64,000 bases of DNA from Bugula neritina (lineage: Eukaryota; Animalia; Bryozoa), in the NCBI GenBank assembly GCA_964035545.1, contig OZ037771.1:14569133-14633132 (forward strand). The letters run 5' to 3'. Position numbers and translations under genes: made by a program. This document shows, piece after piece, positions 16,764 through 64,000 of this stretch. Below the pieces are notes generated by a model. It was not told the origin of the DNA, searched no databases, and was given only the letters and a program-made list of their open reading frames with translations. Position 1 is the stretch's first letter. Every line of letters begins with the position of its first letter.

Positions 16764-19700
16764 ATGAAGCAGTGCTGGTGGATTTTTGCTGTAAGTATTC
16801 TCTATTTTACGTATAAGTAGTTGTAATGTTGAGGTTGCCCAGTGGTCGCCATGGTGTAATGGTTGGAACACTTGCTTGCAAGCTGGAGGTCTCGAGTTCG
16901 ATTCTCAGTGGGGGCAAATTTATTTTTCAGTAGTCAAAAATAATCCGCTAAGAATGGAAGTTGCTAGAAGCAGCCCTGAGTTAGGGAGAACTTTGTACCG
17001 CACCTATTTGTATACCCCTTCCAAACGACACACTCAGTCACACCTAAGCAGCTCTAAGCAATCTTCACCATAGCAATCAACTAAAACATTGTACACAGTA
17101 ATCGTACTACTGACATTGCTTCTGTTTCTTATTTTAGAGCGCTCTGCTCGCTGCCTGTGGGTGGGCGGAGTTTACTAACTACTCCAGGTAAGATATTGAA
17201 ATTATTGGTCTCAAAAACTGGCAGTGAATTAATTACCCACATTTAGTGTACGTTGTACAAAGCCCTAATTTAGCCTCTAACATAAACGACTGAAGGGTGA
17301 TGTCTAGTAGCTAAAAACAGCTACTAATTTACTAGATTTGATCAATGGACAGTTAGCTGTTTCAAGAATATTGCTGTCCAGAAATATCACTTTAGGCAGC
17401 TCAAAGTGTCAGTCTGTGAACTGCATTACAAAATAGTCTCTAGCAAATTTATTCTGAAATTACTGATTATTTAGAGATTGAAATTTTTAATCTCTTTTTT
17501 TCTAAACATAGTAGCACTGCCTGTTTTCATGTGTTGATAATTTTGTTTAGTTCATAAAGTGCCCTATCATAGTGTTTTCGTGTTTGTGAAAATGTGCTGC
17601 TATTTGAAAGGCATAAAAACTTTCTTTGCAGTTTGCATAATAATCTGCTAAAACCAAATTCTTCGTATTTACTTTTCAACCTACTTTTCAACTGTTTAGA
17701 CAATATATGCAGTCTATTGCATTGTCAACACAAGTTAAGGTTATTGTAAAAGTTGAGTTGCTACCGATAGAAAATTATTTTGCTGAGCACTTCTCAACAA
17801 ACCAATTACTATATTGTAGTAAAATAGTACAATAATGTAATCCAAAATAAAATTATGATGTCTTATAAATTATTTTGACAAAAATACAATACACATCATT
17901 TGTTTCAGTGTTACATTCAATGAGTCTGCACTGTTTCTAAAGACGTCTGCAGCAGTCTATCACATGGAGTTAGACAGATATAAAAACGACGGGAGCTTTT
18001 TAATTGCAACATCGAGTAGCCTACAAACCACTGATGGTCGAACCTTTACCACTCTCTTGACATCCTCCGTGTTTAGCTTTGCACAAGTTAACTCAACTCA
18101 TGTAGCTGTAAGTGACTCTAAAAAACACTGCATTAAATTACTGAACAGAAAAACTAACGGGTTAAAAGATTTTGCCGGGACATGTGGCTCAAGAGGTTAC
18201 AGGGAAGGAGGGGTAGGTGTTGGTAAGTTTAACTACCCATGGGGAGTGGTGGTGGATGTTAGAAACCCAACCCAGCTGTTGGTAGCAGATCAAGAGAACG
18301 ATGCGCTGAGATCTGTAGACTTACGATCTGGAGAAATACGTACGGTAATAAGATCTGGTTTTACTAAACCACATTCTCTGCTTTGGACAGACGGACATTT
18401 GCTTGTGACCAACCGCTATTCTTACATTTCTCAAGTGAACTGGTCTGATAATGGTACTGTCAGCAACACGCTAATAGTTGGAGACAAAACAGCAGGGGAT
18501 GCATATGGAGAATTTGATGAGGCAAAACTTAGCTTTCCGTATGAGACTGTAAGGGTGGGTGATGACATGTACCTTGTTGCTGAATTTAGTAGCAAAGAAC
18601 TGAAGCTAATTGACACGGAGAGACGAGTGGTTGGTCCTGTGTGCTTTGGAGGAGAGAACCCCTGTGTGACAGGCAGCAAGTTCCCAGATGGGGCTCTATC
18701 CTTACTTAATGTAGAAGGAGAAGTTTATGTGGGCTTGTTCAATGCAGAAGTTTACAAGTTGAGTGGTGAGTAACAGTTTGGATAACAAAAAGCAGCAATG
18801 ATTTTATAGCGATGGCTCCAATGTATATATATAATCATCAATTGTTTACTAAACAACACATTTCATTGGTTATTATTTTCAATTTTTAAAGTCTTTTAAG
18901 TAGACATACAGGCTGAAGGTTTCAAAATAATGAAACAAAATATTTTAAAGAATCATTATTTTAAAAAGCTGCAAAACTTTATTTTGTGTTGGAGCTAGTT
19001 TGAAATTTTAGTAAACAATTCACATATAAACATAATTTGCTAAAACAAATTTATTCTGGGCAGTAGCAAATTTTTATAAACTTGGCAAAGCAAGTTACGT
19101 CTTAAAGATGCTAGAAATTTGTATCAGTAGTCACAACTAAACTACACAACTAGCACACAATTAACACGTATATTTTGCTATATACCCTGTGAAGGCAGCA
19201 GTTTAGCTGACAGTAAGCTGCCTGACATATGCTCACAGAGAAGGAATATTACGATTTTCTTACCTCCCGGTGAAAGTACAGCCGAAGTTCAACTGGGAAA
19301 TGATTTTGTTAACCTACCAGAAGGAGTTTACAAAGTAACAAATAGACAAGACTTAAAAGCCTGTATCTACCAGGTTACTGTGAAAAGTAAGTGAATCCAA
19401 GGGTCTTTCATGGTACCAATAATTTTTCTGTTATATTCTTAAGAGTCATGATACATTCTAATTGGCTTATCATCTGGTCTCATAGCTTTGAATATAATTT
19501 GTATTTCGAGATGCAGTAGATTAGCATTCGCTTTAAATATAATATAATTAAAGTACCATTAGTTTTATGAGACAAACTTGACTTCCCACATCAAAGAATA
19601 AATTTGCTACTGGTGTCCCTGTTGGTGCTGAGGAGACTTAGTAAGCCTTCCTGCAGTAAAACGTGCTGATCACAGAAAAACTTTTATAAATTTTTGACAT

Positions 19701-20981
19701 TAGACTTGACCATTGCATTAAAAGCATTATAAACTGTGGTTAAAAACACACTTAGACATTTTCTCAAATGCGTAGAGTCACCTATATTGAAGAGAATGGC
19801 GTTAAAGTTTGATTATGCCGTCTCATGCAAAACCATTAATGAAGATGCAACCAGATTAACGCTCGACCCCGTCCTGTATCAAAGAAAAATTGAGCTTCAA
19901 GGAATCTGCGGCCAAGGTAAAATAATTAAAACATTTTGACACAAACATTCTTTTGGGCCAGATTTGTTTACTGCAACTATTGTCAAACAGCATGCACTTG
20001 GTTTTTAGAATATAAAGGTAACAGTGCCCAACAAACATGTACATGACCAATTTTTTATCTTTTAATATTACATTGAAGCATGATTTTAAATTACTTGGAT
20101 TCTTTCACCGTAGTTATATTTATTAGTCAGCAAAGAGGAGTGCAAAGTGCAGAGTAACAAGCCTCAAAAGGGCATTATAGTACGAGTATTGCTTGTACAT
20201 TCAAATTATTCTATATATGAAATTTAGCTGCTTCGGTACTACCTTTGCGATAGGCATTAGTTTATTAGCTGCAGGATGATGGAACACGATCACTCATACT
20301 CCACAGTTGCTCTGTTTCCTATAACACTTGATTCCAGTTGCTCTCCTTACAGACTGTACCATGTCTACCAGTATACAACCATTCTACGACTGTACCAATA
20401 ATCTCCTGACCGTCTACTGGCCAACTGATGAGCTGTATCCTGCCACCATCTTGGAACCTCCGGCAGTGTTGAGTGAAGAACTGAAAAGGAGGCTGAATCA
20501 ATCAAATTCTCGAAGATATTCTGATATTTTCATTGGCTCTCACATACCTCCGTAAGTTGCAATTTTGATGTATAATGTTTATTACATCTTTTATTTCTTT
20601 TGGATTATTTTAATTTGATTACATAAATTTATACATTCTCGTTAGCCCTGGTTGCTTATTTTCAAGTCTTTCTTTGCTTCTTTGCAATATAAATGGTTTT
20701 TACAGTTCTGTGTTTAAAAATTTAAAAAAATAAATTAGACACGCATGCATAGTACGTACACATAACATGAACACAACGCACATGCACGCGCAATCAAGTA
20801 ATGTATATATAGCCTATATTTATATGCTCGAACACAATTTAAATATGTATATTAGTATACTGTTAACAGGATAATTGCTGCTAAGAAGAACTCAAAGGGA
20901 GAAGTTGTGGAAGTGATACTTTATTCAACTTGTGTTGATGAGACTCCAACATATGATGCTGTCAAGGACATGTGTACCTAA
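16764..20981 (+). CDS. Secreted NHL beta-propeller family member N1, about 525 aa; exons 16764-16790, 17138-17187, 17909-18765, about 19195-19386, 19776-19916, 20353-20551, 20870-20981
   Basis: Signal peptide MKQCWWIFA-SALLAACGWA. NHL motifs include FAGTCGSRGYREGGVGVGKFNYPWGVVVD, LLVADQENDALRSVDL and GEFDEAKLSFPYE. Then a HYR-like exon and C-terminal exons ending STCVDETPTYDAVKDMCT*. Frames join with intron phases 0,2,1,1,1,2. The exon-4 acceptor is ambiguous (19195 or 19207). Confidence 0.85.
16821..16915 (+). mobile_element. tRNA-derived dispersed repeat (SINE-like); other copies at about 27376-27445, 30295-30360, 37491-37585, 39222-39292, 39431-39525 (+) and 46327-46415, 54167-54205 (-)
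   Basis: A-box-like tggtgtaatgg, gcttgcaagc anticodon-arm remnant and B-box-like gagttcgattc. Multiple diverged intronic copies. Confidence 0.75.
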
Positions 20982-21620: not shown

Positions 21621-23639
21621 TCAGATTTTCCTATTCTTTAGGTCATCAATCAATTTGTCAGTTTCAATTGCTGAGAGGTCAAAGAATATGACTGCGGCAC
21701 GTGCACGACTATGATCCTTTTCGGTCTTATTTTCAGACAACATATGTTTCTTGACTTGCTGAGTTTCAGCAGAAATTGTCCTCACAATGTTTTTTATTAT
21801 TTGAAGCGTTTCTACTGAAGAAAAACGGCTACAGCTAATGTATTCCATGCAATCTGGTGCGCCTGTGGAGTTGTCATTTGCCACATTGTCACTTTGAGGA
21901 GTTGCATCCTCTGCTGAATATTCACCTTCAGGAGTTGCATCCTCTGCTGAATATTCACCTTCAGGAGTTGCATTCTCTGCTAAATTATTGCCTCCAGGAG
22001 TTGCATCCTCTGCTGAATTATTGCCTTCAGGAGTTGCATCCTCTGCTGAATATCCACCCTCAGGAGTTGCGTTCTCTGCTAATTCGTTGCCTTCAGGAGT
22101 TGCATCCTCTGCTAATTCGTTGCCTTCAGGAGTTGCATCCTCTGCTGAATATTCACCTTCAGGAGTTGCATTATCTGCTAATTCGTTGCCTTCAGGAGTT
22201 GCGTTCTCTGCTGAATGTTCACCTTCAGGAGTTGCGTTCTCTGCTGAATTATTGCCTTCAGGAGTTGCGTTGTCTGGTGAGATGTTGCAAGGTGCCAAAG
22301 TGGTGTCACCTGAACCAGGAGGGTTTGCTGCTTGTGCTGCTTCAACTGTAGGGCTGCTTGATAGCAGTTCTATGGCAGCTGCCAATGGACTGCTGCTTCT
22401 GGTGTCACTACCAACAGCTGACTCAGCTACGGCCTGATATACTGTTGAGCTATTTTCAGACATGCTGGAACTGGAACTGCCTAAGCTTATGGAGATGTCT
22501 GTGGGGAGGCTGGCGGCATTCACAGAATCTACTGCGGCATTCCCGAGAAGTTCTGCTGCGTTTTTCAGCACCAAATGAGAACCTCTCAATGTTATCGTAG
22601 GAAAATTGATAAGACTTCTTTCAAATGATTCTATTGCAGATCTACTTCTGACATTACATCCCATTTTTTCAATTGACCTTATGCTATGCATGAATGACTT
22701 GACTATCTTCTTTATTAATTCTTTTTGACACATGGTGATAACTCGGAGTCTGTCATCAGATAAAGGCCCACCAGACTGCAACAAGAGCTCCATCGTTCTG
22801 GCAGCTGTGCTAGGAAGAAGCCGTGACTCACCAACACTTGAAACTGAAAGACAGTATGAATTGGTCCTGTGCATATAGAAGGCAGTGTCGGTCTTAAGAA
22901 GATACTTTTCTATGTGCTTTTTAATGAGGCCAGGCACACAGCTATAACAGTATGACTGTCCACTAACTGCAATTAGTTTTACTAGTGGTGTTCCTCTGTG
23001 AATCACTAAACCCTCCACACCTCTTGTGCAGCCTTTGGGTAGAGCAGTCTTTAAGTCTTTTGTAAACTCGTAATAACACAGAGTTTTATGTTCCGCAACG
23101 TCAACTTCCAAATCTCCTGCATGCAAATCTCCTTCTGTACAGAACAACACTACACAACAATTACCACACTGCAAACGTACAGGCTCATCCTTGTCCAATC
23201 TCACGTGAAATCTGACCGGGTGTTTGAGGTTGAAGTGGTATAGGAAGTGCACGTCTGTGATGGTGGCTTTGTCACCTATTGCCAAACATAGTTGATGAAA
23301 TACAGAAGTATTTGTTTTCTCTAAGCACGTAGCACAGACGTATCGCGACGTACCTTCAGGAGCAAAGAGCTGAACCACTGGACTTCCAATCCTAATAACT
23401 CGTGTGTTACTTTCGGTGTGGAATCGGTCATACCAGTAAGTTTTAATAGCAACTACTGCTTGAAAATTGTAGTAAATGTGCCATTTTTCTAAAGTATAGT
23501 TGCACTTAATGCTGATAGTTCCACAAAACCCAAGGTTTGAAAGTCTAAATCTACATTTAGAGCACATGTAGGTTTCACCACTCTGTGCTATAGATATGTA
23601 AGTTTCTACTGGATGGTGCTTGTGCATTGCCTCTGCCAT
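21621..23639 (-). CDS. Orphan 672-aa protein: two tandem CxxC...CxxC modules, a Ser/Ala-rich linker, 11-aa acidic repeats and a helical C-terminus
   Basis: A 2-kb uninterrupted ORF in AT-rich DNA. An acceptor (ttgtag) lies 4 nt upstream of the ATG and a donor (aag|gtgagt) at 23869, implying a 5'-UTR intron. No family recognised. Confidence 0.75.
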   Translation of the reverse strand: MAEAMHKHHPVETYISIAQSGETYMCSKCRFRLSNLGFCGTISIKCNYTLEKWHIYYNFQAVVAIKTYWYDRFHTESNTRVIRIGSPVVQLFAPEGTSRYVCATCLEKTNTSVFHQLCLAIGDKATITDVHFLYHFNLKHPVRFHVRLDKDEPVRLQCGNCCVVLFCTEGDLHAGDLEVDVAEHKTLCYYEFTKDLKTALPKGCTRGVEGLVIHRGTPLVKLIAVSGQSYCYSCVPGLIKKHIEKYLLKTDTAFYMHRTNSYCLSVSSVGESRLLPSTAARTMELLLQSGGPLSDDRLRVITMCQKELIKKIVKSFMHSIRSIEKMGCNVRSRSAIESFERSLINFPTITLRGSHLVLKNAAELLGNAAVDSVNAASLPTDISISLGSSSSSMSENSSTVYQAVAESAVGSDTRSSSPLAAAIELLSSSPTVEAAQAANPPGSGDTTLAPCNISPDNATPEGNNSAENATPEGEHSAENATPEGNELADNATPEGEYSAEDATPEGNELAEDATPEGNELAENATPEGGYSAEDATPEGNNSAEDATPGGNNLAENATPEGEYSAEDATPEGEYSAEDATPQSDNVANDNSTGAPDCMEYISCSRFSSVETLQIIKNIVRTISAETQQVKKHMLSENKTEKDHSRARAAVIFFDLSAIETDKLIDDLKNRKI
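21898..22270 (-). repeat. 33-bp coding minisatellite, (ATPEGxxxAE[N/D]) x11 plus a partial unit
   Basis: Repeated ggagttgcatcctctgctgaatattcaccttca-like units, in frame within the 672-aa ORF. Confidence 0.95.
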
Positions 23640-24638: not shown

Positions 24639-28747
<4,109 letters not shown>

Positions 28748-29682: not shown

Positions 29683-30790
29683 ATGGAGTACTGGTATATT
29701 GTTTTATCTGTAAGTGTAATGTTCTGCTCAGAAGAAAGAGCTATTTGAAAATATAATATGGCAGTTTTATTACCTTTATGATATGTTATGATATACTCAG
29801 TTTTACTGATTTTAGAAAATTGGCTTGTTTTAAAAGCTTTTGGTATGCTTTATTTGCTGCTGGATTATCAGATTTCTTTATAATTTAAGGACCAATTGGC
29901 AAAATTTCGGGAGTACAAATCGTCAAAATAAATCTTTTAATATTATATTTTGCTATAATTACATGTGCATGCGTATTTTTACACCTGTATATACTATAGG
30001 TACATCAATTTCTGATCATTGTATATAAAGTAATTCCTTGTAATATTTATGCTGACTCTCATTCTGATGATATAATAATCTTTGTTTTCAGATATTATTG
30101 GCAAGCACTGTTTGGTCAAAATCAAGAAGATTTCATAGGTAACTCAATGTGATTTTATGTTAGCATGTTTGTATCACTATAATTATTATGAATGCTTTTT
30201 TAAATATTTACAAGCAAAGATAACTATAAACATCTAAAAAAATGCAATGCATAAAAGTAAACTTGCTGAAACCAGAAAAAGATTTGAGTTTGGTGTTGTT
30301 TTGAATCTCAAAGCCTCTGCTTGCAAGCTGGAGGTATATAGTTTGAATCCCTGTTGGGACGTTGGTTTTACTTTACATACTTTACATACTTAAACACTTA
30401 GCTACAACAGACACAAATCTAAACTATATTTATTTAAACTAATTGAAATAAATATGTTGCATGGGTGCTTCATTTATGTACCTTACAACACAACAGAGCT
30501 ACTTCTACAAACAGACAAGGAAGTGAATCGCATGCAACCTGATCAATATATATAAATGATGGAAGTATAATTTTCAGCACCGGATCTCGTCTTCAAGCAA
30601 GTGATGGTCGGGGATCCACCACTCTAACATCAATATACTATGTGCAGCTGGTTTCACACAGATCAATAAAACTCACATATAATTTTACTTCAGCTGACTC
30701 ATCACTGTCTTAGATTACTGGATAGAGAAAGCAAAAGGTTTCCCGTTATAATTGCCGGAACTCATAGAAAGAGTGGTTTTGCAGTTGTGC
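29683..30790 (+). pseudogene. Truncated NHL-family pseudogene
   Basis: Intact-looking leader exons 29683-29709 (MEYWYIVLS) and 30092-30138 (ILLASTVLVKSRRFH). Then a frameshifted propeller fragment at about 30478-30790 (MQPDQY/INDGSIIFST...AGFTQINKTH/...HHCLRLLDRE...IAGT) with no acceptor AG at the expected place and no downstream exons. Confidence 0.8.
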
Positions 30791-31553: not shown

Positions 31554-34500
31554 ATGAGAGAAACTCAAATCTGTGTGGCTGTAAGTATAAAACATTCTTT
31601 CATTGCAAGGTTAGCAAATAAATTTTAAAAGTAGCTTATTTTTTATAATAATATTATATTATATTAATATTGTTATTATATTAAATAATGAAAGTTTAAA
31701 TGCCATACATTAAGTTGTTGCAGTTAATGCAGGTTTTTTTCCAATAAAGGAATGCAAGTGTAAAAATCAATAAAATAAAAATTAATAGTATATCTAGATT
31801 AATTTAAGAGATAAGGTGGGAATTAAATAAAGAAAAGCTTAAAGAGCAAAATTGAAATGAAACCTATTTATTTTTAAACACAGCAAAACACTTATGATAA
31901 CTATTCTTAAGCCACAGCTTTTAATTTTCACTTTTAAAGGTTTTATTGGCTGCTGCTGCTTTTGTGACATCTTATAGTCCAGGTGATGAAGCAACCAGGT
32001 AATTATTACCAAATGTTTCTACTAAACATATTTGAATACAAACTGTAACTATATATGCTTTCTGATCAGCTATTTTACATCATGCGTACTTTTAGTGTTA
32101 GCTACACTACTCATGAGGTATTTCTGGAAACTTCCTTCAGAACGTATCACATGAAGCCTGACAGATATGAGAATAACGGAAACATTCTACTTGCTACTAG
32201 CCAAGGTCTACTGACCACTGATGGGAGGACAACTTCAACTCTTTTATCATTTCGAACACACGGTTTCGCACAAATCAACGCAACTCATGTGGCTGTAATT
32301 GATTATTTCAAACATTGCATCAGACTACTAAACAGAGAAACTAATGAGACTCAGCTTGTTGCAGGTACATGTGGATCTTATGGCGGCTATTCAGAAGGAA
32401 AAGTAGGGGTGGGGCAGCTAAGGTACCCTATGGATGTTCAAGAAGATTTAAGAAACCCGGGTAGTTTGTTAATTGCCGATTCTGGGAACAGTGCGTTGAG
32501 GTCTGTAAATTTATCGACAGGGGAGCTGACTACAGTCATCAGAGGAGGACTTATCCAACCTCGGCGGTTGCTATGGGCTGACCAACGGCTGTTCGTAACT
32601 AGTCTGAATTCTTACATCTCTGAGGTTATCTGGTCAGATGATGGAACTGCCAGCAACATTCCTATTGTCAATTCTACTGTATCAGGAGATCGGATTGGGC
32701 GATTTGATGAGGCCAGACTGCTTCGACCCTACAGAATGCTAAGAATAAGAGAGAACTTGTACCTTATTGCTGACTCCGGCAGCATGAAGCTGAAACTGAT
32801 GAACACACACAGACAAGTAATAGGGCCTGTCTGTTTGTTTAAGGAGGATTCTTGTGTAAGCAGCACCCGTCTTCCTGTCCACCCCTTGTCACTGATGAGG
32901 GATGGAGATGATATTTATGTCGGGACTGGCAGAAATATTTACAAGCTAGGAGGTAAGTAAACTTTATGTATCATAAGTTTTAGAATGAACGTTATTTACT
33001 GCATGATTTAAATATTCAAAAAAGCTACTGAGCTTTATATGTATATTTTTGCCGAAGTTGCAGTAGCATCTGTAAAATCTAATAAAGCTACCCTGTTAAA
33101 CATGCGTTCAACTAGCTAGAAGGTCTAAATTGAAATTCTCCTGGTGTATTTAATTTCACCACAAAAATCAATGGTCAATACTCAAGCTGTACATGCTGAT
33201 AGGGCAGTAAGCCAATCACGTCAGGTTAGCAACTGCGGTAATCTATTAAATACTATAAACCACATAATATTACACAGCCCATAAAATAAGCACAGGTTTT
33301 ATCAAATTCGAATATGCAAACTTATGTTACAATATATTTTGTGTTGTTTGTTGCAGGCTGTGATTTAATCAAAGAATGTCTGCAGCCAAACGCCACGGCT
33401 CTTCTGACTCCAGGCCAGAGTACGGTAAGGGTAGATGTCGGGAATTCTCTTATAAACCTGCCAGCAGGTTTCTATGAAATAACAGGCAAATATGAGTACA
33501 AGCACTGCACTTACTACGTTAGCGTCACGAGTAAGTGTGCAAGTAATACTTGTTTCTGTTATCTTGCTGGACACAGTTAATTCAGATTTGTATTTGTCAC
33601 TAGAGCAATATTTTGTTCCATTTAGGTTTAAGTTTGAAAGACTTTAGTCTTTGACATTCATAACAGATATGCCAATCAATTAAAAAAATACTATTAAAAG
33701 ACATATTTTTTGAATTATCATAGCAATTTGATGCTTATGTGAAACATTTGTACATAATACTATACTGCTATAACTTTTGTTCAAGAGCTATAGTATAGCA
33801 TTGGCTGTACAAAATGACTCTAATATTCATACAGAGTCACCAATAGTGAGAAGATTGCTATTTAAGTCTAAATACATTGTGGCATGTGAGACTTTTACCA
33901 CCAGAACCGCTCAGAGGTTACTAGAGTCTGTTCTATCTCATAAACGCAATCAGCTTCAGAATGTCTGTGCTCATGGTGAGTGTATACCAACTCAGACCAC
34001 AACCTCGTCAACTAAACAACCAGTACTCTAATTGTCAATGGTAGAAAATTTTGGTAGATAATTTAATTCTGTATGTGAGATATCAAAGTACTATAAATAA
34101 TAAATTACCTAATCTAATAATTTCAGACAAAGTGATTAAACAATAAAATTATTTTGTTATTCCAATAGTACTGTTTACTGAAAATGATAAACACATTTTA
34201 TAGTAAGCAAATATTATTCTCTGAAATTGTTTGATGTGAGTTTGATAATCATCTCCAATACCTTACTGCATTTATATATTGTTTAAACCAAAGCTATAGT
34301 ATTATTAAGTTTATTAACGCTGTTTCTTGTGCCTCTTGATTCTATAAGTTGTTCCTCTTACAGACTGTTCAATGTCTACCAGTATACAACCATTCTACAA
34401 CTGTACCAATGATCTCCTGACAGTCTACTGGCCAACTGATAAGCTGTATCCTGCCACCATCTTAGAACCTCCTGCCATACTAACAGAGAAGCTACATAAA

Positions 34501-34948
34501 AAGTTTGACCAGTCAAATCTAACGAGATATACTGGAATGATTCTTTTCATTAACCGTTCTTTGTAAGTTTTTTATTTCTAGCTTGGCATATAATACAATG
34601 TTTTGTATTTCTGGGGAGAGACTATTGAAAGTTACAGTTACTTTAGTGGTTACTTCAAATTTATGCATTATGCAGCTAATTTGTGCTTTTTACTTCTGGC
34701 TGCTTTGGCTGTTAGCCAAAACAATTCAAGATATTGAGGAGTGCAAAGCTTTCTAATAACTAGCATTTGATTTTCCTAAAAATATAAACTTATGCCTAAG
34801 TTTATTCTATGCAAAATGGTAATGATTTATTTACAGGTCCTCCACCTCCCAAAACACTTCCAGGAAACATGTTATAGAAGTGGTGTTTGATTCCACCTGT
34901 GTTGTTGAAACTCAAGTATATGACGCTGAAAAAGACACTTGTTCATGA
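31554..34948 (+). CDS. NHL family member N3, about 522 aa; exons 31554-31580, 31940-31998, 32096-32952, 33357-33530, 33835-33975, 34364-34562, 34837-34948
   Basis: Leader MRETQICVA-VLLAAAAFVTS (an in-frame ATG also exists at 31539); complete seven-exon plan; ends STCVVETQVYDAEKDTCS*. Confidence 0.85.
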
Positions 34949-41927: not shown

Positions 41928-42044
<117 letters not shown>

Positions 42045-45400: not shown

Positions 45401-46584
45401 ACCGCCTAATATCATGTCTTTTACTGGTATTAAGCAAAACACAATATTTTTTTACTGTACTGCAATTATTTAGTTAGTCTTTCTACTATAGAAATTGTTA
45501 GTGTGTGCTTAGTTTTAGGTAACTTTTGCTTGTCAGCGTAACTATGGCAAAACAAGCACATTTTATTCAAAACATAATTAATTCGTATAATTAAGGTGTA
45601 TGCCTGTTTCTGCAAGTGCATTGAGTACACAACTCTAAGACAGTATTGCAATCTATTTTAGTGACCTCAGTAGTTATAAGATAAAATATTATATGGCAAA
45701 ACTGTGCCATATGTGTACATTATATGTGGCAGTTATTGTACTGGTTACTATGAAATTTAACTACATTTTAGCAATGTTTTCATATTGCATATACTGATGA
45801 CATGTATGACTGTTTTGTAGGGCTGCCAGTTCTATGGTCTCTTCAACTAGGTGAGTTACACTTTGCCTGCCATCACAGTCAAGTTTTCAACTTTTGTAGT
45901 TTAAAAAATCCACCACGTTGATTGTTTTCAATAGAAGTAGCTTAGAAATACAATATAATGTGCGAAAATGGGAAAACATTTATATTATATGTTAAATTTT
46001 GATACATATTACAAAAAAAATCAAATTAATTAATGAGTCGTTGTTAGCTTCTGGCCTCAAGTTTAAAAACATTTATTTTTAAGTGAGAGAGCTTATTCTC
46101 AGAGTCCTATTTATACTTTGAAAAATGAGAGTGTCTAAACCTGTTGTTGCATGACGGAATACCTTCTGAAGTTTCCAAATAGAGTAAACTGGTTTAGTAA
46201 AACGGGTATATCTTTAATTAGTATATAAAATACAATAGGCAACAATATTCTGGTGTGGGGTATTTTACCTAAATTTAAAACGGCTGCATTAATGTAGAAA
46301 ATATAATATGCTATTATAAAACTTTTGTCCCACTCGAACCCAAGACCTCCAGTTTACAAAAAGTCGAGCTAACCTTTACACTATACAGGGGCTGCTAAGT
46401 AAACTCACCACTACAGCTATAATAACTGATGTTGTGCATGTTAATTCTAAAGAGTTATTTGTTACCATGCAGGCTCATTTCTGCCAGAAAGAATACAAAC
46501 GGCGAAGTACTGCTGCCGGTTTTCATATCGCCTTGCGCTGACGAGAGGAAGAGATACGACGCCGTGAGAAAGATTTGCTACTAG
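42498..46584 (+). CDS. NHL family member N5, about 475 aa, lacking the HYR-like exon; exons 42498-42524, 42615-42676, 43453-44309, 44581-44721, 45065-45263, (45821-45850), 46473-46584
   Basis: Leader MKSWQYLVT-WLCAAVSRS. The propeller exon is followed after only 271 nt by the exon-5 homologue (EPPVMKRLSFSSEYDINC). Ends ISPCADERKRYDAVRKICY*. Confidence 0.82.
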
Positions 46585-47504
46585 GTGTCAAGGACATATT
46601 GAGGTCAAGGGTATCAGCGATTGAAGTCATGTCACTATTGACGTTGTGTAGAAGTATAGAAAACGTAAGTTTTAGGTGGAAGAAAGAAGTTATTACTGTA
46701 ATTTTATACAATTTTGCTTGTCTCCCCATGCAATATTGCACTTATAAGCAATTATTTTTAAAATACTATAAAATGGTTGTGTGTCGCACCATTTTGCTAG
46801 CACTTATCGCTTAGATGCACAAATAAGTTCCTTTCTGTTTTACTATATTATATATATTCTTATTATATATCAAGTGTAGCCCACCTTGATGATTATTACA
46901 CATTTGAGCTGCTATTTATATTTATGCATGATATCGGGAACAAATTAAAATGGTTAAGGAGGAATGAAGTGGATAATTGTCAGCCTTAGGGTTGAGCAGA
47001 TACAAGTTATTGCTATTGAAAAGATAAATCAGAAGTAATGCTGCTTGTGCTGTTGCTGCTGCTATATGATGGAGAAAAGCTAAAAAGTCTGAAAAAATGA
47101 AGAATGTTTTGCAATTTGCTTTGTTTCCATCTCAGCTCAAACTTTGACAAAAAATAAATATTTCAACATGCAAACCCAGCCAAGACTACAATAATGTTTT
47201 ATTTTATGAAAGTTAAAATGACTAGCATTAGCTTATAGGATGAATGAGCGAGTGAGAAAGCTGGTATAGCAATAAGTATTTTATATAATACTGCAATATA
47301 CAGCTAATATAGCAATGACTCTTTACTAATCCAGCAAAAACAGCACACTACTATAATATTTAATACATGATTGCTCTTTCGGATTAGAATTTTAGACAAA
47401 AATCTGTGATGGTGAGTTGCTGTGAAAAACCTCATTAAAATGCTAAATAAGAACAAAACGATATATATACCATAAAGTGAACATAAAACATAATACTTCT
47501 CATG

Positions 47505-47532
47505 AACACATGCACACATACACACACACACA

Positions 47533-47598
<66 letters not shown>

Positions 47599-47737
47599 CG
47601 CACACACGCACACACGCACACACGCACACACGCACACACGCACACACGCACACACGCACACACGCACACATACACACACACACACACACACACCCACACT
47701 CACACACACCCACACACACACCCCACACCCACACCCA

Positions 47738-47778
<41 letters not shown>

Positions 47779-47837
47779 ACACCCACACACACCCACACAC
47801 ACACACACACACACACCCACACACACACACACACACA

Positions 47838-47882
<45 letters not shown>

Positions 47883-47884
47883 CA

Positions 47885-47921
<37 letters not shown>

Positions 47922-47972
47922 ACACCCACACACACCCACACACACACCCCACACCCACACCCACACCCACAC

Positions 47973-48006
<34 letters not shown>

Positions 48007-48170
48007 ACACCCACACACACCCACACACACACCCCACACCCACACCCACACCCACACACACCCACACACACACACCCCACACCCACACACACACACACAC
48101 ACACACACCCACACCCACACACACCCACACACACACCCCACACCCACACCCACACCCACACACACACACA

Positions 48171-48269
<99 letters not shown>

Positions 48270-48424
48270 ACACACACACACACACACACACACCCCACAC
48301 CCACACACACACACACACACACACACCCACACCCACACACACCCACACACACACCCCACACCCACACCCACACCCACACACACACACACACACCCACACC
48401 CACACCCACACACACCCACACCCA

Positions 48425-48465
<41 letters not shown>

Positions 48466-48482
48466 ACACCCACACACACCCA

Positions 48483-48533
<51 letters not shown>

Positions 48534-48760
48534 ACACCCACACACACACACACACACACACACCCACACCCACACCCACACACACCAACACACCAACACA
48601 CCAACACACCAACACACCAACACACCAACACACCAACACACCAACACACCAACACACCAACACACCAACACACCAACACACCAACACACCAACACACCAA
48701 CACACCAACACACCAACACACCAACACACCAACACACCAACACACCAACACACCACACAT
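47505..48760. repeat. 1.25-kb compound CA-rich microsatellite: (CA)n, (CACACCC)-type and (CACCAACA)n blocks
   Basis: Directly visible; generates the HT/CV ORFs. Confidence 0.98.
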
Positions 48761-49073
48761 ACAATACTATTATTCATGATTAATTATGGTTAATAAATTT
48801 ATTCACTACAGTAATGGATGGGAGAATAGTATGCAAGTCATTGTAACATACAATTTCTGAGAGTATAAAAAATTTTAAAAGGGAAATATTTTTAGATGTG
48901 TTTTTGTATTAATAATCATGTATAATAAATTGAGTAATTCTATTTATTCTAAATCGAAGGCATATAACTCTGTAGCTTTTACTCATCTGATTGTCTTGCC
49001 ATGTAGACTAATTTACGTATCTTATGGCTACAGCTAGAAAGCAGGTACTGACACTTCAAGTTGTTATAAACAG

Positions 49074-49185
49074 GTTGGTTGCTGCTAAGAAGAACTCCAA
49101 AGAAAAAACCATGCAGATATTTCTCATCACATCCTGTGCTGATGAGACTCAGTCATATGATGCTGTCAAGGACACGTGTGCTTAG
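49074..49185 (+). other. Orphan intact terminal exon (exon-7 type) of the NHL family
   Basis: aaacag|g then LVAAKKNSKEKTMQIFLITSCADETQSYDAVKDTCA*. Same 112-nt length and phase as N1 exon 7; no upstream family exons between 46584 and 49074. Confidence 0.8.
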
Positions 49186-50644: not shown

Positions 50645-53392
<2,748 letters not shown>

Positions 53393-53802: not shown

Positions 53803-54873
53803 CTAAGTACACGTGTCCTTGACAGCATCATATGTTTGAGTCTCATCAGCACAGGTTGAATAAAGTATCACTTCCACGACTTCTCCCTTTGAGTTCTTCT
53901 TAGCAGTAACTATCCTGCTAATAATATAACCATAACCATAAACCATAAACCATAAACTATAACTCTCCGAAATCAAAAATAGCTGAATAATCAGAAAAAA
54001 ATCATGGGAAATCAAGCAAAAATAAGAAGCATCTTGATTATTTAGGTGTGTTCATTCATATTTTACTAGTTTTGGGCAAAAACCCATGTTCATCAGCAGC
54101 TAAATTGTAAAAATAGTTAAAAAATGGAGATTTCCAGTGTGTACTAAATTTAGTAAAATGACCTAATTGCAAGCAGATGTGCTAACCATTACACCACAGA
54201 GACTACTGATCAATACAGTGATCTATAGACTTTCACAATGACAACTAATTTGCATAAAACTTCGGTGAATAAAGAATTCTGAATTGAATGGTAGATGTTT
54301 ATACTTGCTTTCATAAGTTAAACAGAGAGTTAGGAAAATTAAACCAAACCTAATAAAGTGTTTTCAGTTATGAGCTCAAAATTTTTTTTCTGGTGTTTTC
54401 TAGCTTCAAAAATGTAAGCTGTAAAGTATTTATTTAGCTGAAGCTAAGCAAATCTATACAGCACAATTTTGTCCACTGTCAAATATACTATGAAAAGGAA
54501 TGCAACAGTTTTTTCTTATAGAGAGAAATATTTTAATTAATACACACAAAAATATTTAATGTAAAACTTAGTCACACTACTTAGTTCACGGAACACAATA
54601 GACAATTAAACCTCTTAAGTATATACTATGCGCATGCAACTATGCACCAAGATGTATGTTGTAGAACATAATGTAGTCTACACTTACCTTGACTCATTAT
54701 CCCTATTAGCTTCTGCCTGTCCACAGACTGCCAGCAGCATCTAAAACATGATATATTATTATTATATTTGCAAGAAATTATACAATGCTGTCAAGTTTTT
54801 AAAATATGTGAAAAGTTTGAAAATTTTGAGTAAAGGTATCATAAATACTCACAGCTATAAACTACCAATACAT
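53803..54873 (-). pseudogene. Inverted, internally deleted copy of N6: exon 1 54873-54853 (nonsense), exon 2 54740-54688, exon 7 53914-53803
   Basis: Reverse strand reads MYW*FIA|gtgagt (N6: MYWWFIS), MLLAVCGQAEANRDNES (N6: ILLVVCGQTTADRNNET, same 53 nt) and IVTAKKNSKGEVVEVILYSTCADETQTYDAVKDTCT*. Upstream similarity extends to about 55000 (aactaacatatgctg). Confidence 0.85.
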
Positions 54874-55450: not shown

Positions 55451-57641
<2,191 letters not shown>

Positions 57642-57656
<15 letters not shown>

Positions 57657-57830
57657 CAACTATATATATGTAACCAGACAGTGTTTTCCTTAACAACTAT
57701 ATGTAACCAGACAGTGTTTCCCTTAACAACTATGTAACCAGACAGTGTTTCCCTTAACAAGTGTGTAACCAGACATTGTTTTCTTTAACAATTATGTATC
57801 CAGACATGGTGTTTTCCTTAACAACTATGT
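57642..57830 (+). repeat. About 31-33 bp tandem repeat (cagtgtttcccttaacaactatgtaaccaga) starting in the last codons of N7; homologous array at 61081-61280 after N8
   Basis: Five to six copies at each locus. Confidence 0.9.
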
Positions 57831-58269
57831 ATATATAATATATATAGCCAGGTATGGCGTTTACCTTGAACTTAACGTTTACATCTTATTCATGCCAGCG
57901 CATTGTAGTACTATAACATTTTGCTGCATTTTATATTGGACAACCACCTGGTACCCTGATGAAATCGATTATATATAACCAAATATATATATGCATATAA
58001 TATTAAGCTAAAATTGTTGCTTTAATATTATTTGGTAATTTTTATTTGTAAACTTTTTATTATATTGATATCTTTTAGCTGATACAAAAGCTACTTTATC
58101 ATCAAAGTGTAAACTGGTCTGTGTGAAGCTGAACAATAAAATAATATAAAGTATGAAATTTAACAGTTGTCCACTAATTGATGCCATACAACTAATCTAT
58201 TTTTCTCAATTCCACTTTTGCAGTTTGTTTCTGTTAATGCTTTTCACATACATAATATATTGTGCCTCA

Positions 58270-58487
58270 GTGTGTGTGTGTGTGCGTGCGTGCATGTGTG
58301 TATGCGTGTGCCTGTGTGTGTTTGTGTGTGTGTGTGTGTGTGTGCATGTGTGTGCCTGTGTATATGTGTGTGTGTGTGTGCGTGTGTGTGTGTGTGTGTG
58401 TGCGTGTGTGCGTGTGTGCGTGTGTATGTGTGTGCATGTGTGTGGGTGCGTGTGTGTGCGTGTGTGTATGTGTGCATGTGTGTGTGT
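58270..58487. repeat. Degenerate (TG)n microsatellite at the N7/N8 duplication junction
   Basis: Lies between the end of unit 1 (about 58211) and the start of unit 2 (about 58579). Confidence 0.95.
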
Positions 58488-58821
58488 AAAGAATAAAAAT
58501 GGGCATTAATAATACTAAGCTAACAAAGTTTTTGTTCAGTGTAAGACTAAATTTCATAGATACCTGCTACGATAATATCAAGGTGATGAAATCAGTAACT
58601 TAGCTACAATTATTATCCTTGGACAGATAATTCTATGTTTCAATAAAACTAAGTTCAGAGATAATAATAATTTGAGAATTCAATAGTCTAGAAATGTTTT
58701 CAGAGTGCAAATGAGTTTTGATTCTAACAGCTAGTGAGCAGCATCAAGTGAAACAGAACTTGCATGCTTTCTATGCAGGCATTACAATCATTATCTGAAC
58801 AGTGTTCTACAAACCAACTTA

Positions 58822-60567
58822 ATGGGGTGGCTGTTGTTTGTTTCTGTAAGTTTAATTCTAGTATTATTGTAGCAACTTCTTGATTTTTAATTTCTACTTG
58901 CAATAGTTGTGCCTATAGTTTCATGTTTGAATATATTTTTTTTAGGTTTCTGCAGTCATAGCAGTTTGTGTGAGACCAGAAGATTCAAGGTTTGTAAATT
59001 TAAATTACTGCAGTAGCCAAAAGTTTACAGGTTTATTTAATATTTACTATAAACTGTTAATCTGGTCAATATTGCATTTGTTAGTATTCCATAGGAAAAT
59101 GATAACCTTTTATTATTGCATTATGATTTATTTGTCTGTTTGTAGCATTACTTTCACTACAGCAGAAACGTTTCTTGAAATTGATGCTTGGGTTTACGAT
59201 ATGCAACCGGACTTGTATAAAGGCCGAGGAAACTTTCTGATTGGTACCTCTCTAAGCTTTCAAACAACTGATGGGAAAAAAACAACCACTCTTTATAACG
59301 ACAAGGTGATAGGGTTCACACAAGTCAACAAGACCCACGTAGTTCTAGTAGATTACACCCACCACTGTCTTAAAATATTGAACAGAGAAACTCTGCACGT
59401 GAAGATTCTAGCTGGGACTGAAGATTCAAAAGGTTTTCAGGATGGTGGGATTGGTGTGGGCATGTTTTATTTGCCATGGCAAGTCAAAGTTGACATCAGA
59501 AACTGGGGCAAGTTATTGGTGACTGATCAGTTCAACAACGCTATAAGGTCTGTAGATATGAACACAGGGGTAGTGGAGACAGTTATTCAGTCTGGTTTTA
59601 CGCATCCCCAAGGGTTGGAGTGGGTAGCTGACAATAAGTTGTTAATAACAAATCATTATCATTATATTTCTGAAGTGGAATGGCTTGACAACGGAACTGT
59701 TAGTAGTAACGTACTTACCGGTGCCAATGAGTACGGTCAAGTCAACGGGGCGTTCAGTGAAGCTAGATTCAAAATGCTTTACGATATAGAAAAGTATAAA
59801 AGCGACAAATACCTCGTTGCTGATTTTGAAATTAGAAGATTGAAGCTGATTGATTTAAAGAAACAGACAGTTTCTCCCGTCTGTTTTGAAAATGAAAATC
59901 CTTGCATCGCCAGCACCTATCTGCCACATCATCCACTTTCAATTCTGAACTTTGAAGAAGAAATATTTGTAGGCATGCACCGTGACATCTACAAGCTTAC
60001 TGGTGAGTTTATAACTTAAGACATCACTGGTATGCTATCAACTTGTACGGCGTAGAATTGAATATAACTTTTTACTACAAACTCTTGTTTTCAGAAACAA
60101 AGCTAATGATTAGGCTGAAATTTCAAGTTGAATATCAGTTTCCATGTCGTTTCTTCAAAGAGGCTTCTTTCTTAGAACGACTGGAAAACTTATTGAGTAA
60201 AAAAAAAACGTATGTCAACCAGGCTTGCTCAAACCGTAAGTTCTATATATCTATATTATACATAAAATACTAAACTTATAATAACAGGAAAGGATCTAAA
60301 CACACATTAAATGTTTACTATATAAACTACATTGCACTGTGTATACATTTGTTTCTAGATTGTTCTGCATCAGCTCTTCCACCAACCTACACCTGTGATA
60401 GTGACGTGATAACTGCTGGTTGGCTGACAGACAACTTGTATTCTACCAACATGAAGAAAACGCCTGCAGTTATCGCACAGGAAGTAGTACCGAGATTAAA
60501 CCGCTTCTCACCAATGGAATACATAGTGTTTCATCTTCCTTTTACTAACATGTGAGTTGTACTTACA

Positions 60568-60607
<40 letters not shown>

Positions 60608-60747
60608 CACGCACTCACACACAGACACACACACACACAAGCATGCACATACACACTCACACATGCACGCACAGATGCTCATGCACACACACACGCACGC
60701 ACGCAAGCAAGCACGCAAGCAAGCACGCAAGCAAGCACGCACGCACG

Positions 60748-60789
<42 letters not shown>

Positions 60790-61086
60790 AAATTCATGGT
60801 ATTGCTACTAATAGGGCTTAAGTTAGAATGTAATTTATTATTAACTATTGGTCTTTTTTATAATTATGAAATTATCTAACTTCTAAAAAAATGATATCCA
60901 TTGTTGCATTATGTCTTGCTAATATATGTTGATGAATTCCTTAAAATAAATTGTATTATATGTTGTTACAGAATTGCTCATAGTCAAAAAAATGACAAAG
61001 GGACTACTGTTAAAGAAGTGTTTTTTGTAACCTGTGCTGAGAAGAACTTGTCTTACGACCACATAAAGAGACGGTGCATACCTTAA
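58822..61086 (+). CDS. NHL family member N8, about 457 aa, recent duplicate of N7; exons 58822-58845, 58946-58989, 59146-60002, 60095-60235, 60359-60551, 60972-61086
   Basis: Leader [16 protein letters not shown]; near-identical to N7 including introns; ends [19 protein letters not shown]. Confidence 0.85.
60565..60790. repeat. Compound (CA)n/(GCAA-GCAC)n/(TA)n microsatellite in the last intron of N8
   Basis: Directly visible. Confidence 0.95.
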
Positions 61087-62150
61087 CAACTATGTAACCA
61101 GGCAGTGTTCATCTTAACAACTATATGTAACCAGACAGTGTTCACCTTAACAACTATATGTAACCAGACAGTGTTCACCTTAACAACTATATGTAACCAG
61201 ACAGTGTTCACCTTAACAACTATATGTAACCAGACAGTGTTCACCTTAACAACTATGTAACCAGACAGTGTTCATCTTAACACCTCCACCATATTCATAA
61301 ACATCTTACTCATAACAGCATATTAAGTTGTACTATAACACTAATTTGCTGCATTTTATATTTCACAACCACCTGATACTCTGATCGAATTGATTATATA
61401 ACAAAAAATATGTGTGCATTTTATATTAGGCTAAAAATGTTTTTATAATATTTTGCAATTCTTATTTGCATACTTCTCATTATATGTTGAATTTTTTTGA
61501 GTTGTGCAAAAGTTGTTTTATTATCAAAGTAAGATATATTTGTACATCTGAACAATAAAACAGTTAAAAATTGTAAATTTAAAAAATTATCCACCCTTAC
61601 ATTGATGCCATACAATTAAATCATTTTTTCAATTTTTTTTATTATTGCGTTTAAGCACTCATCATAAGTTCTTGATCCTATGGGTACATATATATTAGGC
61701 TACTCTCAAGCTAGGGTGACAATGCAAAAAATCATCCAGCTGTAGACATAAGTTAAAACAAGAACTTGGAAATATGTTTGTGCCATATGTGTGAATATTT
61801 CAATTCGATTGATATAAAACATTGCAAGATTTAAATTTACACTATTTTGAAATGTTTAATAGATTTTATATTAGGTGACATACAGAAATCGTCTTAGAAA
61901 CTAGAAACAATTCTACCATATTATTGTAAATAAATTATAGGTGCGTTAGTACAGTAGATAAACACCTGCTGAGTGGTAATAGCATATGATAATTATATGT
62001 TTAGTATGTCATCGTAATAAACTGTTTCTGAAAACGCTGTGATGTATTTGGCAAGCTGGTAATGGTATGTTATTATAACAAGTGTTACCAGCTGAGGATA
62101 AAATACTCGGTTTATATTCTATGGTATCTCAAAGACATCAAGTACGAATT

Positions 62151-64000
62151 ATGAACTACTGGTGTATTCTGTCTACAGCTGTAAGCATTTCATTTTTACG
62201 TCAATTTATTATTTGCTCTAAAGCATGGTAATGTAATTATATTTAATTAAATGTATGCACTTATTAGTTATTTCTCTTTTCAGATTGTGTTCGGATTTTT
62301 CAAAGTTGGAAAAAGCAGTGATCATCTCCCTCTCAAGTAAACTAACTATAATTAATAAGTCACATTAAAATATAGTTTTTAGCGCTCGGTGTTTTCAAAG
62401 TTGAGAACTTTCTAGACTTACAGATTTTATTGTCATGTATGATAAAAGCATAGTAACTAAATCAGAGTTTTTATATCTTGTTAGAGACATAACTTAATTG
62501 AAAGCACAGCTAAGGTTGTAACAGCTTGTAAAAGGGAAACATTATTCATCAGATGGCTTAATGCGTTATATGCCTGCCACAATCTTTACAACTTGCAGCT
62601 TACTTATAATACTTTGGCTTTATCCCACTTAAACATTTCCCACTTAGACAATTTTTTTAATTTGGTACACTATATAATATAGTAATATACAAATATAACT
62701 GTTGCATTTACTGCTAAGCATGAAATGAGCTACTGAGCCAGCCATTTGCTTTAAGCTTAGGGCCACACGGTGCGTATTTTCGCATGTGAAAATTGAAATC
62801 ACTAAGTAGCAAAGGTGTCCCTAGGTGGCCCTAGGCTAACTCAATACTAATTTAGCTATATTTTATTTTATTCAGAATAACAGAATAAAATGCACAAATG
62901 CATTTTATGGTATATTACATATACTGCTATATTACAACCTTTTCTTATTTTATTTTGTCTATCTTTTAGCCTACCTTTAAGTTAAAGGTTTGTGCAAGAT
63001 ATATGGCTTCTTATAGAAGCGTTGTTACTGTAAGTGGCTTGCTGGTGGCTTCTTTGCTTGCTATTATGTGCTAAATGATAGCATTAAATACATATATTAC
63101 AATAAAATTTATAAATATTGTCCAAGTGGGAACAGTTCATGTGGAAAAAATGTTTGAATGAGATGACACCAGTATTTTTGTAAAGCTACTCTAATTTTAG
63201 AGCTTCCTACAATGGCTTTCAGCTGTTTCTCAACACATCTGGCACGGCAGTCTACCAAATGCAGCAAGATGACTATAAAAGTGACAAATATATTTTAATC
63301 GGTACTTCCGAAGGGATCAAAACAACAAATGGAGAAACTACTGAAGTTCTTGTTCCACTCTTGCAGGTTAGAAGTTTCACTCAAGTTAACGGAACTCAGG
63401 TGGTGTTTGTAGACTACGGAAATCATTGCGTTAAAATTTTAAACAGACAGAACAATAGCGTGAAGGTTTGCGCCGGTGTGTGCGGAAGCTTTGAGGAGAA
63501 AATGTATGAAGATGGTTTCTTTCATCCCTTTGCATTAGAAAAAGACATCAGAAATCCAGGACAAGTTTTAGTGACAGACTTTAAGACACAATCTATAAAA
63601 ACTGTGAATCTGAATACAGGAAAAGTTGAGTTACTCATTAGGTATGATTTCCGGAATCCAATTAGCCTCCAATGGTTTAATGAAACACTGCTGGTAACCA
63701 GCTATTATGACTTGATCACCCAGATTAGCTGGAATAGTAATGGAACTGTGAGTGCGCATGTTTTGACTGGCACTAGGAATGTGTTTGGGGACCGGCTAGG
63801 CACATTCGATGAAGCAAATTCATCAACTATTTATGACATTAAAAAGTATCAAAACGGAATATATCTTATGGCTGATTCGAGAAACAGGAAACTAAAACTA
63901 GTGGATATGGTTGCTAGGAGAATTGGCCCTGTTTGCTTTAATAAATACTTCGCTTGCACAAGAAGCACAAAGTTTTCATCTGAACCCAGGTCTCTACTAA
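62151..64000 (+). CDS. NHL family member N9 (runs off the window; absent from the ORF track); exons 62151-62180, 62284-62336, 63201->64000
   Basis: Leader MNYWCILSTA-IVFGFFKVGKS. Open frame from 63202: ASYNGFQLFLNTSGTAVYQMQQDDY...SFTQVNGTQVVFVDYGNHCVKILNR...DIRNPGQVLVTD...RKLKLVDMVARRIGPVCFNKYFAC. Confidence 0.85.

Follow-up and report, generated by a model that had tools for sequence, protein, structure and literature searches.

The stretch of Bugula neritina DNA analysed here, 64,000 nucleotides at C7:14569133-14633132 of the 216-Mb assembly (the window), carries a tandem array of nine genes, g1 to g9, each centred on a single large exon that encodes an NHL-type propeller. A tblastn search of the window with its own long + strand open reading frames returned nine + strand propeller exons of ~270 codons each, the ninth of which leaves the window, in agreement with the nine paralogs counted in a first-pass annotation made from the letters alone. 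Six genes have a propeller exon of 857 nt and two have one of 854 nt. Pairwise identities are 37-52%; the exception is the pair g7/g8 (~88% at the nucleotide level). Strong divergence at near-constant exon size had been described before and is borne out. Over 268 aligned columns the nine exons are 41-52% identical to the first, and 30 columns are invariant. The N and T of a Q[VIM]NxT sequon and both cysteines of a P[VF]C[FL]x5C motif, likewise described earlier, are unchanged throughout the nine-exon alignment.

Tail exons were placed through iterated profile searches (jackhmmer) on all stop-to-stop pieces, together with splice candidates, and the spliced models of the window were joined in scripts to check reading frames and count substitutions. 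Spliced g1, g2, g3, g7 and g8 are open frames of 452-522 amino acids (aa) with AG/GT at every junction (Table 1). Within the window, exon 4 (171-180 nt) is present only in g1-g4, and a diverged form belongs to g9 past the window end. Exon 5 (138-141 nt) and exon 6 (193-199 nt) are found in g1-g5, g7 and g8, and the last exon in all genes, plus three extra copies. The propeller exon of g5, g7 and g8 joins exon 5 directly, with phases 0,2,1,1,2. A single exon/phase plan (0,2,1,1,1,2) had been ascribed to the whole array; it is confirmed by complementary DNA (cDNA) for g2, but g5, g7 and g8 do without exon 4, g6 does without exons 4-6 and g4 is interrupted by a stop. Remnants are present as noted at first pass, although not as a set of three: we find one degenerate propeller exon and three orphan last exons, one of which is the copy behind g6. 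The array runs on past the window end (locus L022), where the tail exons of g9 are followed by at least three further genes.

Table 1. Genes and gene remnants of the array. Positions are those of the window unless given on C7; E1 to E7 are exons 1 to 7, the propeller exon being E3.
Feature	Position	Strand	Exons and state	Support
g1, seven exons, 521 aa model	16764-20981	+	E1 16764-16790, E2 17138-17187 (both predicted), propeller 17909-18765, E4 19207-19386, E5 19776-19916, E6 20353-20551, E7 20870-20981	
g2, seven exons, 507 aa	24639-28747	+	E1 24639-24662, E2 24762-24802, propeller 25716-26572, E4 26916-27086, E5 27188-27325, E6 28061-28259, E7 28654-28747; phases 0,2,1,1,1,2	cDNA
Decayed propeller-exon fragment	30478-30783	+	frameshifts and stops	tblastn pieces in three frames, E down to 2e-6
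g3, seven exons, 522 aa model	31554-34948	+	E1 31554-31580, E2 31940-31998 (predicted), propeller 32096-32952, E4 33357-33530, E5 33835-33975, E6 34364-34562, E7 34837-34948	
g4, E3-E7 all present, one in-frame stop	37698-41034	+	propeller 37698-38551, E4 38960-39133, E5 39653-39793, E6 40524-40722, E7 40920-41034; candidate first exon 36382-36408	
g5, without E4	43453-46584	+	propeller 43453-44309, E5 44581-44721, E6 45065-45263, E7 46488-46584; frame open from propeller to stop	
Orphan last exon, behind a 1.5-kb TG/CA-type microsatellite	49096-49185	+		
g6, truncated	50645-53389	+	candidate leader exons 50645-50665 and 50775-50827, propeller 51590-52446; last-exon copy 53303-53389 in the wrong phase	
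Orphan last exon, inverted	53809-53892	-		profile match, E 9e-19
g7, six exons, without E4, 452 aa model	55451-57656	+	E1 55451-55474, E2 55571-55614, propeller 55759-56612, E5 56697-56837, E6 56965-57157, E7 57554-57656	
g8, recent duplicate of g7, 453 aa model	58822-61086	+	E1 58822-58845, E2 58946-58989, propeller 59146-60002, E5 60095-60235, E6 60359-60551, E7 60984-61086	
g9, propeller exon runs off the window	63201-64000	+	E4-like exon, E5, E6 and E7 beyond the window	
Further propeller exons beyond the window	C7:14637703, 14654172, 14664951			

A spliced transcript and the secretion features of its product

Among 1.8 billion proteins searched exhaustively with the profile, a single full-length relative came up (P0004, called at 520 aa); it sits on a 1925-nt spliced cDNA contig (L001) of a public run from another sample. 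The protein matches g2 at 91% and every other place in the genome at no more than 51%, and we therefore regard it as the product of a g2 ortholog or of a very divergent allele. The cDNA aligns exon by exon to g2 at 88-98% nucleotide identity with splice junctions that agree base for base. On this alignment g2 has seven exons, canonical splice sites and phases 0,2,1,1,1,2, and the two coding sequences are equal in length (1524 nt). Read from the actual start ATG, it encodes a 507-residue protein with a 22-residue hydrophobic leader. This leader is the sole 19-mer of the cDNA protein hydrophobic enough for a membrane helix; the C-terminus is not hydrophobic, and 12 cysteines and 3 sequons lie past the leader.

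Leader exons 1-2 are transcript-backed for g2 only. Those of g1, g3, g7 and g8 are in-frame predictions, those of g4, g6 and g9 are tentative, and for g5 none could be placed confidently, so that the hydrophobic leader initially attributed to each gene stands in part. The earlier statement that the proteins have no transmembrane helix agrees with the cDNA protein, as does the overall architecture of a leader, an NHL propeller and a cysteine-rich tail with no membrane anchor. From these features we infer that the family proteins are secreted.

The large exon encodes an NHL propeller

Of eight propeller exons, two exceed the 20-bit cut-off of the Pfam NHL model (PF01436), with 20.9 and 26.1 bits, and three more match it less strongly. 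A profile of the nine exons matches the NHL domains of SOQ1, NHLRC2, TRIM71, Thin, Brat and TRIM2/3 in the PDB with E-values of 6e-16 to 2e-5. Both the Pfam and the PDB profile matches place the exon among the NHL repeat propellers. Six repeats can be read from the sequence at ~45-residue spacing; in each, a proline is followed by a strand, a turn and then a hydrophobic strand closed by D or N. The strand positions are putative: they were derived from the way the Pfam NHL model matches (a proline, then a strand, a turn and a strand closed by aspartate) and from the periodicity of the sequence rather than from a structural model.

Six-bladed propellers also include enzymes, and the family could in principle encode a PAL-like lyase, a lactonase or a strictosidine-synthase-like protein. 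With the PAL domain of PAM these propellers would share their fold class and a location outside the cell or in a lumen. PAL of PAM has conserved metal-binding histidines and a catalytic Tyr/Arg at the propeller centre. No column is an invariant histidine in the nine paralogs, however, the PDB profile search returned no PAL, lactonase or SMP30 chain at E <=1e-3, and the face that holds such active sites is the most variable part of the propeller (see below). Because a conserved histidine cluster is missing and the would-be active-site face is variable, we consider an enzymatic role very unlikely and reject it.

The tail comprises an optional all-beta exon and a six-cysteine region

Exon 4 encodes ~57 residues with two cysteines and one N-x-T. 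An AlphaFold2 model based on 14 paralogs is all-beta (mean pLDDT 78.7); compared with the PDB and the ESM Atlas (Foldseek, atlas search), it gave no significant match. Pfam gave no hit for the 14 exon 4 peptides at E <=10, HYR included, and the HYR model (PF02494) finds 12 exons in the genome, none of which lies in these arrays. When exon 4 was aligned with six true HYR exons of the genome (hhalign), the match reached a probability of 47% and an E-value of 2e-4 over the C-terminal 27 columns only. Exon 4 shares with HYR a C-terminal half-motif and an all-beta character but is ~25 residues shorter. Given the Pfam miss and the 27-column match, the likeness to HYR is therefore a lead and not a membership. 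The true Pfam HYR exons lie at C2:27.67, 28.95, 29.32 and 23.97 Mb, C1:33.51 Mb and C3:2.30 Mb; they belong to other genes, and some are paired ~1 kb apart.

Six conserved cysteines, two from each exon, lie in the ~140 residues encoded by exons 5-7. Their model was built with exon 6 alignment rows only; mixed alignments of the full-length protein with single-exon fragments were dropped because pieces of exons 4, 5 and 7 were misplaced in them. The model (mean pLDDT 63) has the order strand-helix-strand-strand-helix-strand. Its best structural matches are generic ferredoxin-like folds with Z <=5.8 (Foldseek, VIA-align), none above background, and the weak tied matches include SEA (1ivz, Z 4.7) and an alpha-dystroglycan S6-like domain (Z 5.0-5.3). 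A language-model atlas search with the tail peaked at 0.76-0.78, below the useful level, with SEA as a weak lead at 0.76. The beta-alpha-beta-beta-alpha-beta topology of this low-confidence model is that of SEA, and many SEA members carry a G/SVVV cleavage site; Pfam, however, returned nothing meaningful and no SEA hit for the tail or the whole cDNA protein, and the tail alignments contain no SEA cleavage motif. Exons 5-7 probably form an extracellular ferredoxin/SEA-like sandwich.

The array belongs to a large family

Genome-wide, 122 matches to the propeller profile were found, ~80 of them with E <1e-60, and nearly all are single stop-free open exons. This count is a lower bound, and we estimate the family at a minimum of 80-120 members. 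They cluster on C7 (13.4-14.7 Mb), C2 and C5, with scattered copies elsewhere. The tail exons recur on all three, and 20 sampled members have them, some including exon 4 and others not.

Beyond the g2 ortholog, relatives in public protein sets are unnamed single-exon open reading frames on short metagenome or run contigs. The sets searched contain no named or annotated relative and no full-length hit to a characterised family, in keeping with the first-pass annotation, and a word-based search with the tail region returned the query alone. Giant bacterial proteins top the search of 1.8 billion proteins. We do not count them as close kin; each contains 22-46 matched NHL stretches, and tens of NHL repeats per protein account for the high scores. 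Literature on NHL expansions and on secreted invertebrate or bryozoan NHL families yielded no description of the family. Judged by sequence, the array is part of a large gene family that is lineage-restricted as far as these searches reach.

Two clusters of far more distant propeller exons lie at C2:24.67-24.85 Mb and C8:7.6-8.7 Mb (E 1e-44 to 1e-6 with the family profile). They probably represent other NHL families.

The window genes are old and under purifying selection

In comparisons between window paralogs, silent sites of the propeller exons are saturated (synonymous divergence, dS, >1.8), with a nonsynonymous divergence (dN) of 0.38-0.56. The only young pair of the window, g7/g8, has a propeller dS of 0.35 and dN of 0.079 (dN/dS 0.22). 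Between g2 and its ortholog dS is 0.23 and dN 0.047; the overall dN/dS is 0.20, lower in the propeller (0.15) and higher in the tail (0.26). With silent sites saturated and dN/dS at 0.20-0.22, the window array is therefore old and under purifying selection, and the term rapidly diversifying, used for it at first pass, does not apply.

Exons of one gene can differ in age. While propeller exons are saturated, dS is only 0.36 for exon 6 of g1 and g2, where one block of 117 nt is 95% identical, and 0.24 for the last exon of g1 and g6. The array is on this evidence an exon-level mosaic or has undergone conversion, in line with the exon shuffling and conversion first suggested.

The array might alternatively be mostly decaying duplicated DNA that lacks a present function, a reading to which the g4 stop, the truncated g6, the decayed propeller exon and the three orphan exons would lend themselves. 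Exactly one internal stop, a TAA at 39769-39771 in exon 5, interrupts g4. The only sequencing run that we found to hold this DNA (X1) has a contig spanning 37535-40209 that agrees at the TAA and shows a single difference, at 38705, and g4 is likely a pseudogene or null allele. On the other hand, seven of the nine genes keep open, correctly spliced frames, g2 and its ortholog show the low dN/dS given above and the ortholog is transcribed, and nearly all propeller exons of the genome are free of stops. We rejected pure decay on these grounds as the least credible of the explanations weighed here.

At 40715-40844, X1 contains two contig versions with five differences in 130 nt, at depths of ~35 and ~27. 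They fall in the intron after g4 exon 6 and represent two haplotypes.

One face of the propeller varies between paralogs

A young clade of nine members (loci L002-L008, L010 and L011) lies at C7:13.72-14.21 Mb, 0.36-0.85 Mb upstream of the window. Its propellers have a dN/dS of 0.7-1.4 at dS 0.08-0.23, around 1 over the whole domain, and its tail exons, in the same pairs, 0.2-0.7 at higher dS. We take the tails of these pairs to be under purifying selection, with 0.2-0.5 also given as their dN/dS. The ~495 substitutions inferred in the nine copies produced no stop codon, where random change would have given ~20, so the young copies are not decaying. In the same gene pairs, propeller dS is ~0.1 against 0.15-0.35 in the tail. 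The propellers of this clade seem to have been exchanged or homogenised later than the tails, yet to be gaining amino-acid changes on one face.

The variable residues of the young clade occupy the same offsets in all six predicted blades: the four positions that follow the second strand, and the two on either side of the conserved proline that precedes the first. When a blade is made of four antiparallel strands, its B-C turn and D-A loop come to lie on one face, the 'top' by convention, where NHL and WD40 propellers bind ligands. We compared the 44 codons of the B-C turns and D-A loops (twelve loops), the face class, with the other 224. On a parsimony tree of the young clade, 183 nonsynonymous (N) and 24 synonymous (S) changes fall on the face against 200 N and 88 S elsewhere (Fisher 4e-7), a test that is partly circular because the classes were drawn on this clade. 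Pooled pairwise dN/dS is 1.84 on the face, 0.48 on the opposite face and 0.68 in the rest, and the face loops of the clade reach about 1.8-2.2.

The same face stands out in other comparisons. In a C2 clade N/S is 3.4 on the face and 1.9 elsewhere (p 0.056). The proportion of nonsynonymous differences (pN) between g7 and g8 is 0.123 on the face, 0.038 on the opposite face and 0.070 in the rest. Among ten array paralogs, the mean amino-acid difference is 0.73 on the face versus 0.59 on the opposite face and 0.49 in the rest (p 0.005 and 2e-7). Positive selection on the face was not detected for g7/g8 (0.30) or for g2 and its ortholog. The latter two differ at 1/44 face residues, 6/44 residues of the opposite face and 15/179 elsewhere; the face thus differs between paralogs yet is kept within one. 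These comparisons support a variable propeller face as initially proposed, the window paralogs and the young clade pointing to the same face, with selection above neutrality seen only in the young clade elsewhere on the chromosome.

This pattern bears on the possibility that the proteins form structural or adhesive extracellular material, such as cuticle, matrix or larval cement, with copies kept for dosage and loops that are merely unconstrained. A large tandem family with a secretion-type leader and cysteine-rich domains would fit such material, as would the low to moderate whole-gene dN/dS of the window (0.15-0.23). Relaxed loops, however, reach a dN/dS of 1 at most and not 1.8-2.2, and variability is concentrated on one face and not on the opposite one. 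The face is also nearly unchanged between orthologs and hence constrained within each paralog, and the low-complexity or repetitive stretches typical of structural proteins are absent. Since a face dN/dS above 1 occurs together with conservation of the face between orthologs, a purely structural role is inadequate, and we judge it unlikely.

Repeats and neighbouring elements

The DNA of the window is AT-rich (~33% G+C) and contains long TG/CA microsatellites. Those of up to 1.5 kb in introns and spacers lie at 47300-48800, 52600-52950, 28270-28570 and 58250-58500. Two microsatellites sit exactly at missing tail exons, one after g5 and one inside g6, where exons 4-6 are absent and the repeat occupies ~52600-52950. 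Their position suggests repeat-associated deletions.

Dispersed repeats of very high copy number, which contain a tRNA-like box (GGTTCGAACCC), are found at 36944-37265, 37427-37587, 40164-40485 and 16822-16941. Their k-mer depth in run X1 is 2e4-3e5, compared with ~82 for unique DNA, and the high-copy repeats in introns and spacers of the array are probably tRNA-derived short interspersed nuclear elements (SINEs). The segment 16822-16941 had been considered as an exon, which it resembled in translated searches, and was rejected; it is a dispersed repeat that also occurs at 37508-37595 and 39431-39550.

Between g1 and g2, an intronless open reading frame of 672 codons (21621-23639, - strand) encodes acidic ATPEG-type repeats at ~21850-22350 and has no Pfam match. 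Upstream of the array, a reverse transcriptase fragment (RVT_1, E 1e-15) at 5866-6550 (- strand) is split over two frames and is for this reason taken to be a decayed retroelement. An exon at 845-1111 (+ strand) weakly matches the Hemingway/CFAP97 family (E 0.005).

A proposed role in extracellular recognition

On balance, we favour the view that these genes encode a family of secreted propeller binding proteins in which the variable face would set specificity, with the specificities of the old arrays fixed, and which would act in extracellular recognition. Each protein would consist of a short cleavable leader, a six-bladed NHL propeller encoded in one exon, in some members a small beta-sandwich, and a six-cysteine alpha/beta C-terminal domain, and would be secreted and disulfide-bonded. 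The propeller would be the ligand-binding part. Because the twelve loops of one face hold most of the differences between paralogs, each paralog may present a distinct binding surface. The tail, common within subfamilies, would probably confer a shared property, for example oligomerisation or attachment to one partner or matrix. The window genes look like fixed, distinct specificities because the old paralogs are each held by purifying selection, and younger arrays of the family on the same chromosome would still be diversifying on the face.

Judging from these sequence patterns, the role is most likely the recognition of varied extracellular targets, be they microbes, symbionts, settlers or conspecific tissue, and it may be immune, self-recognising or adhesive in kind. 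A family of at least 80-120 members with a secretion-type leader, seen in the cDNA and predicted for g1, g3, g7 and g8, is what a diversified recognition family would look like.

Several observations weigh against this interpretation. Two of the nine window genes are defective, and a transcript is known for one family member only, from a different sample. The propeller strand assignment rests on Pfam NHL matches and periodicity, the loop classes were drawn after the young clade had been viewed, and in the C2 clade, which is independent, p is no lower than 0.056. Estimates of dS can be distorted by gene conversion, of which there are clear signs. Finally, deep paralogs differ in exon 5 as much as in the propeller, so that a 'constant tail' is valid only within subfamilies.

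Secreted effectors or toxins with a defensive, digestive or anti-fouling use, diversified in an arms race against the targets that they hit in other species, would leave the signature that is also expected of recognition proteins: many secreted members, the young copies of which are positively selected on one face. Pfam and fold searches found no toxin, pore-forming or enzyme domain, however, and the propeller is devoid of a conserved catalytic constellation. We therefore hold extracellular recognition to be the better account and an effector role to be quite improbable.

Comparison with known propellers and recognition families

The TRIM-NHL proteins (TRIM71/LIN-41, Brat, TRIM2/3 and Thin) have an NHL propeller, here predicted to be six-bladed like theirs, in common with the present family (profile E 4e-12 to 2e-5), and in them ligands (RNA) bind the face built by the D-A and B-C loops. 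Here, unlike in TRIM-NHL proteins, the propeller directly follows a 22-residue leader, starting ~20 residues past it in the cDNA protein, and has pairs of conserved cysteines as well as a sequon, and the tail is of another kind; Pfam did not find the domains that accompany the propeller in TRIM-NHL proteins. NHLRC2 and plant SOQ1 (thioredoxin-like plus NHL) are the best matches among solved structures (E 6e-16 to 2e-12). Both are single-copy housekeeping genes, whereas the present family has ~100 genes and a Pfam scan of the full-length relative shows no thioredoxin-like domain.

Outside the cytosol, NHL-type propellers are known from NHLRC3, from teneurins (their NHL domain) and from PAM (its PAL domain). 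Of these, PAL is a metalloenzyme, the teneurins are large proteins of the membrane, and NHLRC3 is a single-copy gene whose product has no tail of this kind; to our knowledge, none of them is arrayed or diversified on one face. All three are absent from our searches at the thresholds used.

A broader and more tentative idea, which we put forward as possible but doubtful, is that the NHL propeller serves as a general variable recognition scaffold in three compartments: secreted and humoral in this family, cytosolic in TRIM-NHL ligases and membrane-anchored in NHL receptors. If true, it would amount to a germline-encoded repertoire, a role in which we know of no NHL fold in any phylum.

Large diversified families of secreted binding proteins give many invertebrates their breadth of recognition without antibodies. 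Bryozoans are colonial, fuse with or reject neighbours and carry vertically transmitted symbionts, and the present family, if the proposed role is correct, would be a first candidate humoral recognition system for them. It would also offer a natural propeller series, with different faces on one constant frame. Its closest parallels may be the FREPs of snails, the VCBPs of amphioxus and Ciona, the 185/333 proteins of sea urchins, the C1q and fibrinogen expansions of bivalves and the propeller lectins (tachylectins, tectonins), which it would resemble in being secreted, multigene and tandem, with a variable head on a more constant part and localised positive selection. It differs from them in its NHL propeller scaffold and has no sequence relation to them. 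Known recognition scaffolds are of other kinds (fibrinogen, immunoglobulin-chitin-binding, C1q and leucine-rich repeats), and a family of ~100 secreted NHL propellers under selection on one face would be a new addition to them.

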